DNA from: Dimorphilus gyrociliatus | Taxonomy: Eukaryota > Animalia > Annelida | Assembly (NCBI GenBank): GCA_904063045.1 | Contig: CAJFCJ010000029.1 | Coordinates: 248,001 to 312,000 of the forward strand | Direction of reading: 5' to 3' | Length of the DNA stretch: 64,000 nucleotides | Part shown: piece after piece, positions 928 through 13,085 of the stretch | Position numbering within the stretch: the stretch's first letter is position 1 | Layout: the number at the start of each line of letters is the position of its first letter | Translations under genes and position numbers: made by a program | Notes under the pieces: generated by a model | The model's database searches: none | The model's input: only the letters and a program-made list of their open reading frames with translations | What the model was told of the DNA's origin: nothing

Positions 928-1884
928 GATTTAAACTAATCTACAGCTCATTCCTCCACTACCTCAACACGTTAAAAGGATTACATTGAAAGCAGATTAT
1001 ATAAGATTAAAAAGGATTTTAATACAGTTATACTAGGGTATATTTATTTATCGCTTAATCAGTTTTTATCCGCTAGATGGATAAAATCGGATGATAAAAA
1101 CATGGATTGGTCTTTGGCTACTTAAAAAATTTTCGGTCAATGCTAATCCTTTTCTTATAAAATTCATTATAAAACGGCAATAAATCGGGTTTTACTGAAA
1201 TGAATAGAAAGGGAAAAATGGGACTAGAAAAGTATCAGCGAGAAAATTTACACTTTCTAGTAGAGGAGGCGGGATGTGACATATCTAGTTTTGAGAATTT
1301 ACACTACTGCTATAATTTCCAGATAGACTCTCAATTCTTAATAATAGCTTCTATATAAGAGTAATTTTATAGGCCTGCTCTAGAGAACAAAAATTTTATG
1401 GGAGGGGACACAGCGCCATCTGTCGTTTTTAACATGAAACGTTTATCATATTCGAAATGCAATACTAGAAAAATATTACTGCTATCTATCAACATGTGCG
1501 GGACAATTACGAAAACATATTCTTATTTTCCATCAATATCCGAAGAATTTCCCCCTTTTAAGTACGCCTAGTCGTTACATGATTACTAAGCAATATTTTT
1601 AAGCCTAGGAAAAAAGCGGTTATACAGCGCCGCCAAGTTTATTTTTAGACGAGATCGAGCAACGCATTCGGCACAGCAAAATCCCTGTACGAGCCTGTTC
1701 TAGGCCTATCGCCAACCGCCTAGCTTTGAACCGAATTGAATAGTGTTAGTATTGTATATATAAGCGAAAATCGGCCAGTCAACATTGAACGCCTGCGTGC
1801 GGTGATTTTCAAAAACGATTTTTCTTCTATCGGATAAATGCCAGCTTGTTCCAGCGATGCTTTTCTATAAAAAGTAAGGGAAGA

Positions 1885-4800
1885 ATGCGAAAGCTTTGCC
1901 CGTTTGTTCTCTCTTTCGTTCTCATCTACACTCCAGTTTATGGATTAACGGTGGCTGACGATAGGGAGGGATATATAGAATACGAAAATTGGCTAAGCTG
2001 CAAGAACAGCTCGATACAATTCGATTTCAATACGAGGAAGAGGGATTCCATGCTATTGTATACCGATGATGGCGCCAGGAAGGATTTCTTCTATTTATAT
2101 TTGAAGAACGGTAAACTCTTTCTTGATTTTAAGATAGCTGACGATCAATCTAAGATATCGTCCGGAAGTGAGTTGAACGACGGGAGATTTCATACAGTGA
2201 GTATAAAGCAAAAGAATGCACTTAGTAAGATATTCATATCGAATATCTTAAACAAACATAAACACTTACGAGCAATTAGCATCAAGAAGTCACACAAATA
2301 ATATTACTATGCGTTGACAATGCCTATATATTTATTATATAATTTTATTGATCAATTTAGACAATATCGTCTCTCATACTCTAGGAATGAATATACTTTC
2401 TCATACTCCTCTTGCACCCATACACACTCTCTTTCTCACACACAAACACACACACACAAACATTCATCTATATTCCATTATAAACTCGCGCTTTTCGTCA
2501 ATGAAACTAACTTTTTTTTTTAGTTTTTTTTTATCCCTAAATTCTTCAAAGAGAAATGCTAAATATGCTGAGAATAGGGACGTGATACGACTTCGACAGA
2601 GAAACTCTTATTTACTCGAATATTTTACTGTCTGAAGTGTTTTTTAATGCACTGTACCCAAGCTACTTATTCTTTTCTGTATACGCCTTGGGTTAAATAG
2701 TCAAGCAGCAAATTCTTGTTGGCTTGAAAAATATTAAAAAAATTCGAAAAGAAAGCCACAAGAATTAATTAAAAAGGCATTTCGATCATACAATGTTCAA
2801 ACAATCGAAACACCTATCATCTAGCAAGAAAGCATGAAGAATAAACTTTACATTGCGCTAAAAACATCTATTTATAGTTCATAGTATTTATATTCGTGTT
2901 TAAATCTAATATTATTCCTTATATATAGGCTACAATTTATCAAAAAAACTATATATCAGCGATCTTCTCTAACTAGCAGTCTGTACCGGTTTAGCAATGG
3001 TGTGGTACAACGTGCACGCCCCAAAATACTGCAATAGCTGTTTAAAGACGAATGAATCAAATAGCAATACTCAACGCCTTGGAAGCTACGTAGGCGGGTA
3101 GTTTTTTCCATCAGAAAGAGAGAGGAATGTGTTTGACCATTATGACTAATGAGAACGTAGATTTCTCCCTGCCCGCTGAAAGAGGAAAATTTTTGGATAG
3201 CGGAAAACGTGCGCATCCCATTCTACATTCCTCGCATAGCTGCTAAGCCGGTTGTACTTGAAAAAAAAAATAAGGAACGTGGGTGTGTTCCATTCTATAA
3301 GAATATTTTGACTCCTCAAACTTTTTTCTCTCTCATATTATTCCTTGCGGTTATTCGAAAAACATTACGATAAAATTAATCTGTCATTTAAATTTATATA
3401 TAAATATATATGTGATATTTATACAATTTAATATAAATTATAGCTTTAAACAATTGTAACTTCATATTATCTTTTACGTTAGGCCTAATAGCAATTAAGT
3501 ATGTTATTTATTGAAAGAAAAATAGAGGTGAATAATACACCCCGTTACCGTCTAGAATACATGTGTAATTTGCTTAAATTGTTCAAGTAAACACTGGATC
3601 ATTCAATATCGACATAACGGTCCTTGTTATACGATAAGAACTAATCGTCATTCTTAGGACTATAGGGAATAGTATTAATCTGAAATAGGACAATTCAAGA
3701 AGATATAAAATTCAAACAGGATCTAGCATTTTTTGATTTTGATGATATACTTTGATCATTTTAGAGTAAATAATGATCGAATAACAGGATAACTTGTCTT
3801 TTGAATAGGCTACTTATAATAAAAAGTTGAAAAGCTATTTATGCGGCTTTGTTAGTCACGTTAAAAACGGATCTTTAGGCTCCATCGGTTCAATTTGTAA
3901 ATAAAAGAAGCGCCATCTGTTAGTTTCGAATAAGAATATAAATATATTTTAGTTTCAAGTCATAGTAATCTTCTTCAAATATATAAATATCACTAAGTAA
4001 ATAAGTAGCTCTTAGAAAGTTATTGTACAAGGTTTCAATAGCTCAATGATAAAAAGACGACTATTGAAAAATGCCTATTCAATCGTTTACTTTATTAGGG
4101 ATAAAATAATAAACGCTTCTCATTCCCTTTTTCAGGTTAAAATCGTCCGACATCGTTATGAATTACAGTTAATTGTTGACTCAAGGATAAAATCATATCC
4201 ATTTTCAAGTTCCCCCCGACAATTGGAAAAATCAACAGCGTTCATAATATTTTTTGTTGCGGGTTTTGATCCATCATATAAGAACTTATACAAACAAAAC
4301 TCCTTGGCTAAAAAGGATGCCGTTTTTATGGAAAGGTTCGCTGGCAAGATTATGAATGTTATGTTTTATAGCTGTTCGAGTTGTCTACCAAGGAGACCTA
4401 GAGTTATAAACCAGAGAGGTGTTGTGGGCGTTAGGGAATCATGCTTGATTAAGAATCAGTGTAGGGATTCATGTATTTGTTTTAGCATGGAAAATTCTAT
4501 GCATAGATGCGATTGCTCTAATAGACATTGTAAAAGTGGGGCAAATCATTATAGACTACCTTTTGATGAGTTTAGAAGAGATCATTCATCTGAAATTGAT
4601 TCGTATGTAATATCAAATCCGTCCGGTCTCGATTCAAGATATTTTGGGGCCGAAGTATCCAAGACGCCTGGATTTAGTAAATCCGGTTTGAACTTGAATT
4701 GTAGAGATGCTTATGTCCGCATTTCCGGTGCTTTGTCAAGAGATGAATGCTTAGGAAATTTGAATTTGTGTTCTAGAGGATTTACACTCGGTTTCTGGCT

Positions 4801-7800
4801 AATTGTTCACAAAACACCAAATTCGAAACTTGTTTTTATGAGTAACGGAGGCCACAGCAGCTCCTCTCATGGAATAGCAGTCTACTTTGAGGATGATACA
4901 ATATTCGTTCAAGCCAGAACTTTAACTGGCAAATATTGGATTGCAAAATCTCGCGATTATATCAAGCACAGATGGACATACGTTACAATCACGTGGAGAA
5001 ATGATAGAGGACTTTCACTCTACTTGAACGGCCAGTTGAAGGACAAAAGGAGTTGGTTTGCTGACGTATCAGTAGTAGAAACGCCTACAAAAACTGACAT
5101 AAACGATGAACTTCTTCTCGGAAGGCCTAATGATAATTCCTGGACGAGAACCGAATGTGATATATCCATAGATGAATTTGAATTTTATTCGGAAGAGAAG
5201 GACAAAACTTTCATTCAGGAAAACGGACCAGTTTACAAGTACTTCTGCCCTTTTTCTAAAATAGCTAATCGAGAGTTAGTTGGGGGTAATTTAAGAGGAG
5301 TTTTAAACTATCAAACAGCCTTACCAGAAATAAAATTACATGATGGTTTCTACAAACTCTTACTTAGATATCGTTCGAATTTTAAACAATATATAGATTT
5401 TGGAAAATTTGAAAATAGTTGCCTTAGTGATCTCTCTAGATGTAAATATGGTGCTACTTTACGTATCTACGTGAGGTCTATTGACGTCCTCAGACCTCAT
5501 AGTTGCTTTGTTGATGGGTAATAAATAATACATACTTTTTTAAATTGCTATAAAATTTTCTTTTCACAATGACAACAGGGGTGCTAGATGGTTTCGGATT
5601 TGTGTAAATGAAAAGAATGCTTTATCGACAACAGCATATGTTGGCGATAAAAAATATTCAGCTTTATGGAATGGTATTCAAAGCGATGTTGAGTATAAAC
5701 TTCTTGCATCTTTCTCACCATCCGAAGGTTTGCAAGTTTATGCAAACAATAAATTAGTGGCTAATGATAATGCGCCCAAGATTATTCAAGAAGCTGCACC
5801 AATAGGCCATCTGCTGGTTGGCAGAAGAAACAAACCATCAGATAACTTTGCATATATGACAGCCTACTTCCGAAGTCTGGATATTTGGTTAGCTAGCAGA
5901 AAACATCTGATTAATATTGGTATTCTTAAGGGTGACGGTTATCATATTTTGATACCATTTGAAAATCCAATTCAAACTTCGCGTTACATTGACGTTGAAG
6001 CTCCTAAATCCTGTATTGCAAAGGGTATATACAATACGGAATCTAAAGACTGTAGAATTGGTAATTGCTTAAAGGTGCAGCAGATAGGAGAATACGCAAA
6101 GGCAACCAATTATGTCGGTTGCCTTAGAGATCTAGAATCTTGCAAAAAAGGTTTTACTATTTCCACCTGGGTTATGCCGATTACCTTAAAAGATGATCAA
6201 GTTTTTATCAGCTCTCCTCACTTTCTCTTGTTTTATAAGAATGGAAAATTAAGAGCCGATGTCCATGGTAAGAGAGACTCATGGACAATTTCATCAGACG
6301 CTTTGGTAACGGGGAAATGGCAACATGTTCATGTAACATGGAACAAGCTGGAGGGTCTTAATCTTTGGATTGACGGTCTCCGAGCTCATAAACGAAGAGA
6401 CCATCAAAGTCAATATACATCTCGGGTATTCGAAAATCACAAGATGTATTTTGGTAAACCAGGTCAAGGCCATGGATCTCTTCCAGGTCTAAAAACTATG
6501 GATGCCAAAATGGATGAATTTGAATATTGGAGTAATCAAATAATAAGAGATCCACTTAATTTCGAATATGAAATTATCGATTTGAGAAATAAAACAGGTG
6601 AAAAAGAAATAAGCGGAGAAAGAAGAACAGTCTCTTGTCATACAAAGCGAAACAGTGTTGTTATCCAAAACAAAAGAGGTCATCCTTCTCTAGTTCAGAA
6701 AGGTAGTTACAACGAATATTTAAACTTTGGTCATAATTTTATACCCTGCACGTGCGAGAATTGCCCTAGAGGATTTACTATAAAAATTGAACTTTTAACC
6801 TCTAGTTTGAAAAATAATGCAACGTTGATATCAAGTCCTATGCTAGATATGTGGTGGTACAAGCAAAAGCTATTTGCTAAAGTGAGACATAATAAGAAAA
6901 TTTGGGAAACCTTTGGAAAATTTTCAGATGAAAATCCTAACTGGAGAGAAGTTGTTTTGTCCTGGAGTGAATACGACGGGTTAATACTTTCTTCGGATAA
7001 TGTTGTGATTGGGGTGGGCGAATTGTCAAGAGAGATGACAAATGAAAAAGATAAATTTGGGATAATGGAAGAGGACAAATGTCACATAAGAGGTTTCTTT
7101 CTTATGGGAAAATCACACAATTCTGATTTTCCTTCTCATGGTACACACTACTTTGATTACAATGGTAAAAACGTGACTGTATGGGGAGTAAGAAAACGCT
7201 TCATTACCGATGGCGGTGAAAGTAAGTGATAAAGAGTTTTCTATTTCGTATGATGCTCATTAGCCAGCCCTCTTTCCTTTCCTTCTATACTTTTCAATCG
7301 TATTCTAAGAAAAGACTTACGTATTTTGCCTTAGAGTATTGTTATTGTAGGAAGGTGCGAAATGTTTATATTATTATAAATACTTCTTTAAGTATTAAAA
7401 GTCACAACAAAAGTATTTTTAGCATAATATCGACAAAGTTTATTTTAATATAGAACTAGCTAAATAACTAAATAAAACTTGTATTACACTACGTTATATA
7501 CTGTAATAATATACCAAACAAGATATAGTAGAAACGCAAATACGTCACTAATCCCTTATTTTCTTTTATAAAAATTTAGTAAAACCTGTTCCTGTGACAA
7601 CAACAACTGCTCCAACAACTACACCAACAATAGCAACAACTCAGTATCTTCCCACGAGAGAAACATACTTCAATGACGACTATTGGGTGTTATATAATAT
7701 CTCGGGTATGAAACCCAACTATGAAAATGATGGCGAGAAAGTTACGCTTGTGTTTAAAACAAAGAAAAGAGACGGATTATTGTTTTATTCCGGATTTCAC

Positions 7801-10800
7801 GGAAGAAATGTACAAATTGTTTTAAAAGTAGGTCAACTTTTTATTGAACGCTTGATAATGTCAATAAAATCCAAAATCTTTTATTATTGAAAATAATTTA
7901 CAGAATGGCTATCCAAGTCTACAAGTTTTTGAAGGTAGAAAGAGACAAAGAATTGAACTGACACAGATTCCATCCAAAATATACGATAATCAATGGCATA
8001 CAATAAGACTCCTTAAAAAGGGAGGTTACTTTACCGTCTTCATTGACAACACTGAATTCCCCTATGTATTGCAATACAATTATCCTCTGTTGTGGGAAAA
8101 AGGTTATGTTTTACTTGGTGGAGAAGCGGACGCCGGAAAAGTGTCGGAAAAATTTGTTGACACCAACTTCCAAGGATACATTAAGACTGTAAGTAGATAA
8201 ACAAATTAGACAAAACACTTCCATTAAATTGTATTTTTGTATCTTTAAGGCTTTATTTGATAACAAATATGGTTACTGGATAGATTTATTAAATTTACTA
8301 AATGAGCCTACTCCAAAATATGTTATCCCATATGGTAAACTTCCAAATGCTGATTGGAATTCAGGGCGACCAATCACTCTAATAGGAAGTGGGTTTGGTT
8401 TTGAATTTAAAGCTTGGAAAGCCCAGAAAGGCGATAAACTAAAATTAACATTTAAGACTTTGGAAAATAAGGCTGTTTTAATTTATCAGACAGGAGATAG
8501 TTCAAATTACCTTTTAATTGAGATTTATGACGAAAAATTATGGCTTGTAATTAAGGAAAAGTCAAGATTAACAAGATTATTATTTTCTGAAAGGCGTATT
8601 AGTGATGGAAATGTCCACAATATCACATTAGAGAAGAAGAGCAATCAATTATTTTATACGTTAGATTTTGAGCGGAAACAAGTTAATTATCCATCGCGAA
8701 TGAACCTTGTTAATTCATTGCACGTTGCACCGGGAATAAATATCGAGCTTCCCAGAGAATCATGGGCCAAGGGGAAGAGTAATCGCCGTTTTGTTGGATG
8801 TCTCATGCAGTTGAAGCTAAGTAAAGAGATAGGAATAGATTTGAATAAAGCTGCTACAAAACAAAGATTAACCGGCATTAAAGAAAATTGTACAGCTTTA
8901 AGGAAAGCTTGCGAGAATAATCCCTGTTTTAAAGGCACTTGCTCTGAGGTGACGAGCGAAGAAAGCACCCGGAAATACAAGTGCGATTGTATTGCTACGG
9001 GCTATTCAGGACCGAAATGTGAGGATAAAGCAGATATTTTATGTCTTCAAGGCAATATCGAAGTCTCCTATGCTCGATCAGATTATAAGTTGGTCCCAAC
9101 CAACGACCTTGGATTTAGATTTAAATCTTTTCAAAGAGACTCTTTCATCCTATCTGCTTTGAACGATAATTCAGAAATCATATCAATCAGAGTAGTTTCT
9201 GCCAGTCTAAAACTTAATTTTAATATAAATGGTCAACAAAAGGAAGTGAACATTGGAGAGAATCTTGTAGACAATAGATGGCACTCTTTAGTAATTCGTC
9301 GTAGAAGCAATAAGTTTTATGTAAAATTAGATGACAATTCACAAGTTACTACAGTTGGAGGTTTTCAAGAAGAAAGTGGCTTGTTAAATATTAGAAAATT
9401 GAAAATCGGCATGAATGGAGAGAAGGATAGTTTCATCGGTTACATTTCGTCTTTATATTTTGATGGACAAGATATCTTGGAATCATTAAAGACTGAAGGC
9501 CAAATTAGAAAGTTCCTTAGTAAAGATCAGTGCCCCTTGCCCTATAAACCTGTTACGTTTTCCGCTAGAAAGAGGTCTTTCGCTCAAATTAATTCTCCAT
9601 TGAAGGGTCATTTAACATTTAACTTTAAAACTGAGTTTGGAAATGGTCTTCTCTATTATCAACCCGGAAGTTTAGAGGATTCCTTCTTAGGTCTAGAACT
9701 ATACGAAGGCCAATTGTATATAGTGGGAAGAAATAAAGAAGGAGTTACTAAAACGAGATTAGGCACCCTATCCAAATATTCTGATAACCAATGGCATTCA
9801 GTTATTTTGAAGAAGAGAAGAAGAGGCGATTGGACTGTAAAAATTGACGATTACACTGAAATATTTGACAGAAAAATACCATTTTCTAACCATTTATATA
9901 TTGGAGGAGTTCAAGAATATGTAAAAATACCACCTGAGTTTAAATCCCAGCAGGGATTTGAAGGTTGCATATCTGGTGTTCAGTTGGACGGCGAGCATAT
10001 TGATTTATTTACTTCCACTATTAAAAAGAATATAGAAAGAGGTTGCCATAAATTAGGTTCTATATTTTGCTCAAAACCAGGAATATGCAAAAATGGCGGC
10101 ATTTGCTACGACGGTCTTACATCATTCATTTGCGATTGTAACATGACAGGTTGGGCGGGCAAGCAATGTTCAGAAGGTACGGTTTTTTTTATATTTAGTA
10201 TCAATTATATTATAAAAGTATTATTTTGTATGGATGAAAAAAATATATTCATTTACATCATTATAGAACCATTGGGCTATAGAATAGGGAAGTATAACAA
10301 ACGGGGTATTGTCTTCTATAAGTTCGACGAACCAATTGACACTATTAAGGACACTGTTGCGTTCGGTTTTATGACATGGTATGAAAATGGTACTCTTTTT
10401 AGAGCTGATAGCACTGACAATGGCGATTTTATACGTATTTTTATGGTTAGTTTTTTTATCTCCAAATAGATTTATGTTACATTTTCAATTAAAATTCTTT
10501 TAATTGTGGTTAGGAAAAGGGATACCTGAAAGCAGAGTACAATTTAGGAACAGAAAAGTCATCGATAATTACAATCAACAGAGAAAAATTAAATGATGGA
10601 AAATACCATGTTGTTAAATTTATTAGACATTTAAATTCTAGAAATGCTACCCTTACCGTTGACGATTATCCTTCCGCTTCGTTTAAGAGTAACAGTAAGT
10701 CAATTTTGAGCACTTTTTCTAACCAATTAGTTGTTTATTTACAGGATTTTATAACCTAGTTTTCATTCCTTATTTATGTATGCTTTTCCTTCCTTTTTGC

Positions 10801-13085
10801 TATCCTATATTCTATTATTGCGCAGAATTCGCCCACACAAAGGAATTGAATAGGCTGCAGATTTTGAAAATTGGTGGAAATTTAAGATCCAATGGTGAAA
10901 TTTATGAAACATTTAATGGAATTATCGCAGGTTTATATTGACAGGTAAAGGAAAGTGCAAGTTTTATTGTTTTCTTTTTTTTAGGTGTTTATTATCAAGG
11001 AGTAAGAGCTGGTTCGAGTGGCGGAGCAATTGGAGGCATTCGCATTATAGATTTAGGAAGAAAAGCCATTAGAGATATTAGGGTCTCTGTGAAAGATGAT
11101 GTAACGCCTGCCCCACATCCTTTTAGATTACCGAAGCCAGTGTAAGCTTTAGAACCTTAATTAAAGATAACATAGAGAGTTGACGATTTTTTCCACCATT
11201 ATTAGAATACCAATATTACCTCCTCGTGAGTTCACCGACGGAAGAGCGTTAGCTGCTGGTTCGGAACGACCGAGAGCAGGAGCAGTGGCTGGCGCTTTTC
11301 TCGGTATTTTACTGGCAGCATCCTCCATTATGTGGGCCGTCTATAAGTTGAAACCTGGGAAGATTTTATTGGGTAAAATAAAGGAGTCGAAAGGTAGTTC
11401 CGCTAAACCCTTGCCGTCTCTTTCGCTCTCCACCCAACCCAATCGTCTTAGCCAAGCCGCTTATTCTTCTTCGCAAAGATTAAACGGTCGTACATCAACG
11501 AATCTGAACGAATATTTTCCACCCGTAGGTGACAGTCAAATGGCTCAAACCGAATCCCTTCTAAATGACCTTGAGGCAATGGATAGCGCCAAAGCACCCC
11601 CAACCGCCCAGCGTTTAACGACTACAACAACAACTGATTCAAAGACCCGTTACGCAATGCAAACTATGAGTCCTGGAGCAGTTTCAAGTCCAGGTTTAAT
11701 GGCTGCTGAACAAATCCATGTGGATTGTATGCAAATAACGCGGGACGGAAAGCACGTAGTTACTGGCTCAATGAACAGTCCTCCTTTAATTTGGGATTTG
11801 AAGACGGGTGCTCTCGTTAGAAGTTTGCAAGGTGAAGAGGTTAGTTCTACAGATTTACATTTAGCTGCTGGAGATTCGCTTATTGTTGGCCAAGTTGCTG
11901 AATATACAAGTCTCGATCCAGTTGATGGGACCATGTCAGGTAATTTGTTGTCCCGGAAATTCCAGGTAATGAATTAATCTATTTTAGTTAAACTTGTTAT
12001 GTAAATAAAATAATCGAATTGTGTCAGATATGGGATATCAGCAGTGGTACACCCTTGTCAATGCCCTCGCCAAACGAAGCTTGTACTGCTACAGCTCTGT
12101 TGTCAGATGGTGAGACGGCAGTGCTCGGTAGAACTGAGAAGTTTGGCGGCGGTACAACACTCGTCATGTGGGATATAGCCGGCAATCAATCACTTAGGTC
12201 AATGAACTATACGGGATCAATGGGTGCTGCAGATCCCGTTACGCATCTATATGTCACAAAAGATGATCGCTTCGTCGCTGCCGCTTTCACAAATTCATAT
12301 GACGCCATGACAAATTTTGTCATTTTTGATTTAAGTGCATCGGATGAGGATGGAACGAAGGTCCTATCATTACATGCAAATGCTGATTGTACGGCTGTCT
12401 TGGATAACCAGGAAGCGGTTACTGGAACAAAAGATGGAAAATTAGTAGTGTGGTCATTCAGAACAGGGAAGACGCTTCGACAGGTTTCAAGTCCCTTAGA
12501 AAACTCTACGTTAGGTAGATCAGGTAAGATATTTAACCAGCTTTTAAAAATTCAATATGAATATTAGTAAGTGGAAAAAATTTCCAGCTGGACTTACAGA
12601 GTCTAGGGCTCATGATGATGAGGTATCTGCTGTAGTCGTAGATCATGGCGTAATTGTATCTGCCTCTCACGACCATACACTTAAAGTATGGGATTTAGAA
12701 ACAGAAAAGTTACTGCATACGTTGAATGGTCATACTGATCAGGTAAATAAACAGTTTCGTCAGAATATAAAAGAATAACTAAAAACTTTCATCTATGTTT
12801 TTTTTTCTTAATATTCTAAAGGTCTGGTGCTGTACAATATCAAGCGATGGTGACTGGATAGTGTCAGGAGGACGAGACGGAACGGTTAGACTATGGAAAT
12901 TAGCTACCGGAAATCCTATTTGCTTTTGGAAATGTGCCGTTGATGTTTTCTCAGTAAAGCTTAGTCCCGATAAACAAGTTTTGTGTGCTCTAGGTGATAA
13001 ATTCGGAGCCCGAAAGTTAGTCCTACTTCGAGTAGTTCATACGCGAACTATAAGTCGATCAACTACGCCGGCAGCTTTTGTTTGA
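1885..13085 (+). CDS. Alpha-neurexin-like single-pass membrane protein with ConA/pentraxin-like insert and cytoplasmic WD40 propeller (about 2697 aa, 14 exons)
   Basis: join(1885..2196,4136..5517,5579..7221,7580..7827,7904..8188,8250..10176,10267..10445,10514..10694,10826..10930,10985..11141,11206..11965,12028..12523,12588..12742,12822..13085). All 13 introns are GT-AG and phase-compatible; total 8094 nt = 2698 codons. Order: signal peptide MRKLCPFVLSFVLIYTPVYG, LNS1 (LNDGRFHT|VKIVR), EGF, four CxxxxxxCxxGFT-type modules, Thr-rich linker, LNS2, LNS3, EGF (CENNPC..CDCIATGYSGPKCE), LNS4, LNS5, EGF (CKNGGIC..CDCNMTGWAGKQC), LNS6 ([26 protein letters not shown], matching neurexin [22 protein letters not shown]), TM (AVAGAFLGILLAASSIMWAVYKL), Ser/Thr-rich linker, 7-8 WD40 repeats (e.g. 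GHTDQVWCCTISSDGDWIVSGGRDGTVRLWK). Confidence 0.85.

Follow-up and report, generated by a model that had tools for sequence, protein, structure and literature searches.

Alpha-neurexins follow the domain order LNS1-EGF-LNS2-LNS3-EGF-LNS4-LNS5-EGF-LNS6, which ends in a transmembrane (TM) segment. The linker between their first EGF domain (EGF1) and LNS2 is short, and so is their cytoplasmic tail of the syndecan/4.1-binding type with its PDZ-binding end. Another receptor, PHRED-1, consists of a signal peptide, a neurexin-like ectodomain of LamG and EGF domains, a single TM segment and a cytoplasmic WD40 region (Adler and Sanchez Alvarado, 2017, bioRxiv 10.1101/131789; Dev Biol 427:165). PHRED-1 from the planarian Schmidtea mediterranea possesses six LamG and nine EGF domains ahead of the TM and WD40 regions (bioRxiv 10.1101/131789), is expressed in muscle, and is required for the normal organisation of muscle fibres (bioRxiv 10.1101/131789; PMC6453901). 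Homologues have been named only in Schistosoma, Lottia, Octopus, and Capitella, and the SMART-based description of the protein lists LamG, EGF, and WD40 domains only, with no mention of a Laminin_G_3 or pentraxin-like domain (bioRxiv 10.1101/131789). Here, we analysed a 64,000-nucleotide stretch of AT-rich DNA (GC about 0.26-0.45) from the annelid Dimorphilus gyrociliatus, namely positions 248001-312000 of contig C29 (CAJFCJ010000029.1) in the 77.9-Mb assembly, which we call the window. A large gene on its + strand begins near 1.8 kb. A preceding reading of the DNA alone, the original prediction, regarded this gene as an alpha-neurexin to which an array of four new domains might have been added. 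We find that it is the single Dimorphilus member, and an ordinary one, of a spiralian family of PHRED-1-type receptors. The explanation that best accounts for the whole of the evidence, and in which we place high confidence, is a PHRED-1-type gene with an ancestral Laminin_G_3 array that has been reduced in Dimorphilus.

A PHRED-1-type receptor gene in Dimorphilus

A HMMER search with exon 3 of the gene against 1.84 billion representative proteins gave two matches at E up to 1e-30. One is a 761-residue fragment from the sea slug Plakobranchus, named "neurexin-2-alpha", and the other is a 3736-residue protein from Owenia fusiformis (CAH1790210.1), for which Pfam reports ten LamG stretches, six Laminin_G_3 stretches starting near residue 310, and WD40 repeats at the C-terminus. 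In BLASTP comparisons, the open frames of the window are collinear with CAH1790210.1 from LNS1 to the WD40 tail. We could read the splice sites directly from the sequence, which gave the following 5' part of the gene:

1789..2196, + strand: exon 1 open frame, signal peptide and N-terminal half of LNS1
4136..5517, + strand: exon 2, a single open frame, C-terminal half of LNS1, EGF1-like Cys cluster, module 1 and the first third of module 2
5518..5578, + strand: intron 2, 61 nt, GT...AG, cutting module 2 after two codon bases, with a GG/G codon completed across the junction
5579..7221, + strand: exon 3, 1643 nt, donor GTAAGT at 7222, second part of module 2 and modules 3 and 4
7222..7579, + strand: intron 3, 358 nt, GT at 7222 and AG at 7578-7579, phase fitting as one base plus two
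7580..7887, + strand: start of exon 4, Thr/Pro-rich linker (about 7594-7640), then the N-terminal part of LNS2

From exon 3 onward, the BLASTP matches to CAH1790210.1 are distributed as follows:

Exon 3: residues 560-1040
Later LNS/EGF frames: residues 1225-2871
TM segment in the open reading frame (ORF) 11171-11974: residues 3009-3044, 58% identity, hydrophobic
WD40 ORFs 11992-12564 and 12783-12998: residues 3434-3711, 50-58% identity

Exon 1 carries a hydrophobic leader and a Pfam Laminin_G_2 match of 48 bits covering profile positions 1-65, and is 47% identical to residues 36-112 of CAH1790210.1. Its donor GTGAGT begins at 2197, and the acceptor AG of exon 2 lies at 4134-4135; the join rebuilds the canonical LNS strand ...FHT/VKIVRH. 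Exon 2 aligns with Owenia residues 114-551 (31% identity over 460 residues, E 4e-61) and includes the EGF1-like Cys cluster at 4436-4540, which Pfam does not recognise, while the start of exon 4 matches residues 1143-1201. Besides the match in exon 1, Laminin_G_2 is found at 7868-8197, three times in 8193-10466 together with an EGF match, and once in 10514-10756, giving about six LNS domains along the gene. A single TM segment and then a WD40 region follow, joined across introns by inference and with weak Pfam matches of WD40 type; the WD40 exon is single-copy in the Dimorphilus genome.

The splice phases fit at all junctions of exons 1-4. Exon 2 unites the C-terminal half of LNS1 with M1 and M2a in a single open frame, and the physical connection of the LNS domain to the modules therefore requires no splicing inference; the sequence supports the view that exons 2 and 3 are part of the same gene as the LNS/EGF scaffold. 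With its 1643 nt, exon 3 is not divisible by three, and a transcript that skipped it would be out of frame. A 115-residue ORF on the minus strand at 6731-7078, antisense to module 4, was taken for a chance ORF opposite a coding exon.

The gene thus shares its architecture with PHRED-1, both may be restricted to Spiralia, and it is collinear with annelid and mollusc proteins of this type. All LamG- and WD40-containing proteins retrieved in our word- and length-limited searches came from molluscs, annelids, or a rotifer; the three protein searches limited in this way returned no family member from flatworms, Capitella, or Octopus.

Four related modules between EGF1 and LNS2

Between the EGF1-like cluster and the 3' end of exon 3 (4541-7221), the gene encodes 873 residues, in agreement with the approximately 870 residues originally predicted between EGF1 and LNS2. 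Four related modules of about 212 residues are located here, between LNS1-EGF1 on one side and the Thr-rich linker and LNS2 on the other, which bears out the position proposed for them within a scaffold of about six LNS domains. Throughout our searches and trees, module 2 was handled as two separate exon pieces, M2a and M2b. The modules, with the ancestral counterparts to which we assign them below, are:

4526..5233, + strand: module 1 (M1), assigned as equivalent to ancestral module A, Cys motif 4748-4801
5234..5517, + strand: first part of module 2 (M2a), assigned as the N-terminal part of module B, Cys motif 5420-5473
5579..5936, + strand: second part of module 2 (M2b), assigned as the C-terminal part of module B
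5937..6575, + strand: module 3 (M3), most likely ancestral module E, Cys motif 6120-6173
6579..7221, + strand: module 4 (M4), assigned as ancestral module F, degenerate, with a shortened Cys motif CTCENC at 6747-6794 and no DEF strand

The four Cys motifs quoted in the original prediction are all present on the + strand at these positions. Its claim that the modules are mutually related also holds. Local alignments scored against 200 shuffles gave z-scores of 17.1 for M1-M3, 13.1 for M3-M4, 5.7 for M2a-M3, 4.5 for M2a-M4, and 3.3 for M1-M4, with no significant pairwise similarity of M2b to the other modules by this measure. The Pfam family Laminin_G_3 (PF13385, gathering threshold 27.6 bits) was likewise found as predicted in M1 (48.1 bits) and M3 (49.4 bits). 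Pfam searches of M2a, M2b, and M4 each alone returned nothing, even at E up to 10, and hidden Markov models (HMMs) derived from orthologues were therefore needed. We built a generic module HMM of 212 positions from 36 modules of Owenia and five molluscs. This model found all four modules in Dimorphilus, scoring 134 bits for M1, 122 bits for M3, 44 bits for M4, 27 bits for M2a (HMM positions 51-82), and 47 bits for M2b (HMM positions 104-211). M2a and M2b cover complementary positions of the model and thus together make up one whole module, split by the 61-nt intron.

A C-x6-C pair just ahead of the central strand is nearly invariant among the aligned module relatives. In Dimorphilus, the frames of all four modules have stayed open, and each module still has the Cys pair along with the Trp and Gly residues of the core. 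The W..V..TW..GL and (M/I)DEF strands, described in the original prediction for every module, stand out clearly in M1 and M3 alone; those of M2 and M4 are degenerate. Nor does a Thr-rich linker follow each module as had been supposed, there being a single one, after module 4 in exon 4. The DNA similarity noticed between modules 2 and 3 does exist, as a match of 16 nt (15/16 identical, 5418-5433 against 6118-6133), and it encodes the conserved CL(S/R)DL motif. The internal duplication suggested from it did not hold, as the modules are ancient paralogues. No long DNA repeat was found in 4400-7300, where the longest direct repeats are 15-23 nt. There is no trace of a recent module duplication at the DNA level.

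A six-module array in molluscs and Owenia

When residues 240-1130 of the Owenia protein, its array region, were used as the query, a longer Owenia isoform and five mollusc proteins were retrieved, the mollusc proteins being 36-39% identical to this region over 96-98% of its length. Further mollusc members were found with the tail of the Patella protein. The precomputed Pfam lists of the retrieved family members all include LamG, PF13385, and WD40. The Patella orthologue contains six LamG domains, six modules, and a WD40 region, and the six LamG domains make the family look like a six-LNS scaffold of the neurexin type whose EGF1-LNS2 linker holds the array. The orthologues repeat the Cys motif six times, about every 210 residues; their linker between modules is conserved, and a Pro/Thr-rich stretch also lies between module F and LNS2. 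The generic module HMM gave the following counts:

16 mollusc proteins and the long Owenia isoform: exactly six modules, about residues 245-1515
Short Owenia isoform (CAH1790210.1): four modules, without E and F (412 residues)
Four scallop paralogues of about 2626 residues: no array module
Seison nebaliae (rotifer): about four weak modules, residues 233-1150

The conserved Laminin_G_3 array thus accounts for about 1270 residues of the mollusc and annelid proteins, compared with 873 in Dimorphilus.

Profiles of the six module positions, named A-F, match one another in hhalign with 99.6-100% probability over about 200 columns. To place the Dimorphilus modules, we built position-specific HMMs for the N- and C-terminal parts of A-F and calculated maximum-likelihood trees of the two parts separately, with no exons joined. 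M1 scored 77.9 and 90.3 bits against the module-A HMMs and at most 50 against other positions. The best model for M2a was B_N (34.6 bits), and that for M2b among the six positions was B_C (44.8 bits). The N-terminal part of M4 reached 35.5 bits with F_N and at most 13.7 with other positions, while the position HMMs cannot tell E from F for M3. In the trees, M1 falls inside A with support of 100/100 and 99/97. The C-part tree places M2b with the B modules (91/87) and M3 inside E (85/91). M4 is sister to the Owenia F module in the N-part tree (89/80), its C-terminal part lying unplaced on a very long branch. Identities between the Dimorphilus modules and their orthologous counterparts are 24-38%. 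The modules group by position and not by species, and the array therefore predates the split between annelids and molluscs. We propose from these comparisons that an array of six modules, A-F, was ancestral to both groups, and that Dimorphilus keeps A, B, probably E, and F, two modules having probably been lost. An alignment made with MAFFT --addfragments had suggested M2b to be module D, which would make module 2 a B/D chimera joined at the 61-nt intron. We rejected this assignment in view of the scores (B_C 44.8 against D_C 30.9 bits) and the grouping of M2b with B in the tree (91/87).

Module number also varies among the other family members. Two Owenia gene models on the same 39.8-Mb contig agree as far as residue 1102; beyond it, they differ by 412 residues, which correspond exactly to modules E and F. 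E and F may be an alternatively spliced cassette, or the two models may differ in annotation; an equivalent skip of exon 3 is impossible in Dimorphilus without a frameshift. The scallops Pecten, Mizuhopecten, Argopecten, and Ylistrum have a second family member of about 2626 residues with nine LamG domains and a WD40 tail but no array. The array-less gene of Ylistrum (LOC132559438) has a LOC number neighbouring that of the array-bearing gene (LOC132559439), and the contigs listed for the two genes are equally long. These features suggest a tandem duplicate specific to the lineage, in which the array was lost or had never been present. The Seison nebaliae protein (4756 residues), found by profile search, combines LamG, PF13385, and a WD40 tail with a Frizzled-type Fz domain (PF01392). 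It extends the family, with an added domain, beyond Lophotrochozoa in the strict sense.

Planarian PHRED-1 comprises 2506-2536 residues, and InterPro annotates nothing in the first ~247 of them (PMC6453901). The annotated ConA-like domains lie at 248-430, 466-634, 731-885, 930-1086, 1433-1601, and 1678-1809, with EGF domains between them, followed by the TM segment at 1877-1899 and WD40 at 2085-2469 (PMC6453901, supplementary file 3). By eye, residues ~26-245 show an H-L-P-L-D start, a C-x6-C pair followed by I-I-K-F-W, and a D-D-F-K-F strand. This stretch directly follows the signal peptide, with no LNS1-EGF1 ahead of it. Judging from this inspection, planarian PHRED-1 may keep one array-type module after the signal peptide.

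Other relatives of the modules were also observed. About 70 relatives of module 3, 190-300 residues long and taken from Logan, ENA, and JGI assemblies, carry the full module consensus including the linker motif between modules. These short single-domain sequences are probably exon-sized fragments of array-bearing invertebrate genes rather than free single-domain proteins. PF13385 has at least 39 matches in the Dimorphilus genome itself, several of which are clustered in tandem (C17:39.8-44.5 kb, C4:1.11-1.15 Mb, C6:4.70-4.72 Mb, and C12:679 kb). One of these matches, C12:678979-679590, is closer to module 1 (58 bits, 31% identity) than is module 3 of the same gene (30 bits).

Predicted fold of the modules

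The structure of M1 (4526-5233) was predicted by AlphaFold2 (AF2) with a 71-row alignment that included 68 single-domain relatives. An alignment of M1 with full-length orthologues had been discarded, as it scattered the C-terminal third of the module over distant columns. The M1 model is all-beta, with a mean predicted local distance difference test score (pLDDT) of 87.8 and a predicted template modelling score (pTM) of 0.87. We compared it with structure representatives by VIA-align. The best matches, with Z 18-20, are the lectin-like N-terminal jelly rolls of clostridial neurotoxin binding domains and NTNH, e.g., 3rsj_A (Z 19.8, root-mean-square deviation (rmsd) 2.9, 198 aligned residues), and a bacterial arabinanase accessory domain reached Z 18.5. 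Sialidase lectin/CBM40 domains (Z 14-15), PTX3 (14.8), PAPP-A (14.4), neuronal pentraxin 1 (NP1, 12.8), the PTX-like domain of ADGRG4 (11.9), and the LG domains of laminin, perlecan, and agrin (Z 11-12) follow. All these matches are at the level of the fold only.

The AF2 model of the whole of exon 3, based on a 14-row alignment of full-length orthologues, is poor (mean pLDDT 50.7), with only the core of M3 usable (pLDDT 72-88, compared with 58-73 for the core of M4). M3 in this model matches PTX3 and PAPP-A with Z 14.3, and two-domain LG pairs align across M3 and M4 jointly. The models of M1 and M3 thus clearly predict a ConA-like sandwich, while the prediction for M4 is weak. The failure to adopt such a fold, raised originally as a possible refutation, is not what these models indicate. 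Together with the Pfam matches, they support the modules as ConA-like beta-sandwiches of the Laminin_G_3 type.

Comparison with neurexins, pentraxins, and other lectin-fold proteins

The family appears to mirror the six-LNS/EGF order of the alpha-neurexins (NRXN1-3 alpha, Nrx-1), whose LNS domains are structural neighbours of the modules (Z 12-13). It differs from them in the array at the EGF1-LNS2 linker, which amounts to 873 residues and four modules in the window gene, and in the WD40 propeller of the tail. The Dimorphilus genome has Syndecan-type tail matches (PF01034) on contigs C5, C3, and C20, and not on C29. On the minus strand of C3:452000-461999, LamG exons (L004 7858-8244 and 9383-9673) lie upstream of a Syndecan-type TM/tail exon (L004 3043-3726). 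This locus is a candidate for a canonical neurexin or Neurexin-IV gene, separate from the gene in the window.

Pentraxins and PTX-like domains (PTX3, NP1, SAP; ADGRG4, ADGRG6, ADGRD1) share the ConA-like jelly roll with the modules, and M3 has H-V-H-V-T-W at the place of the pentraxin signature. However, the modules possess about 50 extra N-terminal residues. Alignments with pentraxins start only at model residues 28-51, whereas the best matches cover residues 5-236. The Pfam family Pentaxin (PF00354; gathering threshold 25 bits, signature H-x-C-x-[ST]-W-x-[ST]) remained below its cut-off, with 17.2 bits at best, for M3, where the signature Cys is absent from H-V-H-V-T-W-N-K.

Other Laminin_G_3 domains belong to the same Pfam family, such as the LG domain of PAPP-A, the tandem arrays of invertebrate astacins, and those of SRCR/EGF proteins and GAIN-domain receptors. 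Many Laminin_G_3 relatives from marine invertebrates also show a C-x6-C pair followed by a G-x-T-x-x-x-W strand, as in the modules. Only PHRED-1-type proteins were found to combine a WD40 tail with an array set into an LNS/EGF scaffold; among the other long relatives of exon 3 that were checked (P0006, P0009, P0010, P0039, P0089, and others), none matches the Owenia tail. The best full-length structural match to M1, the jelly roll of clostridial neurotoxins and NTNH (Toxin_R_bind_N), superimposes over about 200 residues at Z 19-20 and an rmsd of ~3 with 13-19% identity, and its Pfam match is weak (21.4 bits, below the cut-off of 23.8). This resemblance is likewise confined to the fold and implies no common function, organism, or context.

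Alternative readings of the array

Several points weigh against a reduced ancestral array in a PHRED-1-type receptor. The equation of M3 with E has moderate support, the N-part tree leaving M3 in an open E/F group. M2 and M4 are unrecognised by Pfam on their own. M4 in addition has a very long branch, of 4.2-4.5 changes per column, and has lost part of its motifs, and by its sequence it may be decaying. The link to planarian PHRED-1 rests on the published architecture of the Lottia, Octopus, and Capitella homologues, and the joins between exons 1 and 2 and between exons 3 and 4 were deduced from splice signals, phase, and collinearity with the orthologue. Finally, a binding role of the array, as proposed below, would follow by analogy from fold and position.

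The decay of M4 could be extended to most of the array, which would then be a remnant without a function of its own in Dimorphilus, with only module 1 (A) under constraint and modules 2-4 drifting as a spacer. Such a remnant would fit the presence of four modules where others have six, the scallop paralogues that do without any array, the absence from M4 of the DEF strand and some of the Cys motif, and the end branches of M2, M3, and M4, at 2.1-4.5 changes per column where the median is 0.6-0.7. We nevertheless consider it unlikely. The branch of M1 is also long (~1.25), so that fast evolution may be genome-wide in Dimorphilus, M3 still reaches 122 bits with the module HMM, and open frames, the Cys pair, and the core Trp/Gly residues are kept in all four modules.

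On the reading suggested by the original prediction, this locus would be an alpha-neurexin of this animal into which modules of the ADGRD type had recently been inserted and internally duplicated. In its favour, alpha-neurexins indeed have just a short linker where the modules lie, the relatives of exon 3 include a sea-urchin protein (P0010) that combines five Laminin_G_3 modules with a GAIN domain, and modules 2 and 3 share the 16-nt DNA match. Against this stand the same site filled with six modules in 16 mollusc proteins and Owenia (36-39% identity), with Dimorphilus having the reduced set, and modules that pair with specific positions in other phyla instead of with each other. The DNA match falls in a conserved motif, and the gene ends in a TM segment and a WD40 tail, neurexin/syndecan-type tails being encoded elsewhere in the genome. 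The specific connection with ADGRD/GPR133 fares no better, the Z of 11.9 for ADGRG4 lying below those of PTX3, PAPP-A, and many bacterial lectin-like domains, and nothing ties the modules to ADGRD receptors in particular. We therefore regard a recent, lineage-specific insertion as very improbable.

Equally hard to credit is an artefact of the gene model, in which exons 2 and 3 would form a separate or nested gene for a free multi-Laminin_G_3 protein with coincidental in-frame joins: the exon joins come from sequence, multi-Laminin_G_3 proteins without LNS domains exist (P0006, P0009, P0010), and other genes of this genome hold the at least 39 PF13385 matches, but exon 2 runs as an uninterrupted frame from the C-terminal half of LNS1 through EGF1 and M1 to M2a, its junction with exon 1 rebuilds an LNS strand, both later junctions keep phase, independent gene models of 15 mollusc species and Owenia have the same order of LNS1-EGF-array-linker-LNS2, and an ENA fragment (P0003) unites a module-type Laminin_G_3 domain and LamG in one protein.

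Possible role and implications

As part of a PHRED-1-type receptor, the array forms the membrane-distal portion of the ectodomain. It could act as an outward-facing region for protein or glycan binding and for spacing in an adhesion receptor, while the cytoplasmic WD40 propeller would recruit intracellular partners. By analogy with planarian PHRED-1, the receptor might take part in muscle-cell contact or matrix organisation. Our literature search for Laminin_G_3 together with neurexin or WD40, or for pentraxin-like terms, found no description of the array. It is automatically annotated in databases, yet without a description in the literature that we found, and its modules are orthologous across phyla at each position.

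A broader proposal, which we put forward tentatively and judge possible without favouring it, is that the array is an undescribed defining part of the PHRED-1 family. Six modules would have entered the EGF1-LNS2 linker of a six-LNS neurexin-type scaffold ahead of the divergence of annelids, molluscs, and probably rotifers. Their number would then have varied between lineages, from six in molluscs and Owenia through four in Dimorphilus and about four in Seison to perhaps one in planarians and none in the scallop paralogue. The array would be the end of the receptor that binds ligand and would underlie the role of the family in the organisation of muscle and extracellular matrix.

Our analysis corrects the tempting reading of a neurexin with a freshly acquired binding array, although the knowledge it adds is modest. 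For studies of PHRED-1 in muscle patterning and regeneration, it provides a defined membrane-distal region as a candidate for ligand binding. For Dimorphilus, the probable reduction from six modules to four would be a small example of how domain number decreases in a compact genome.

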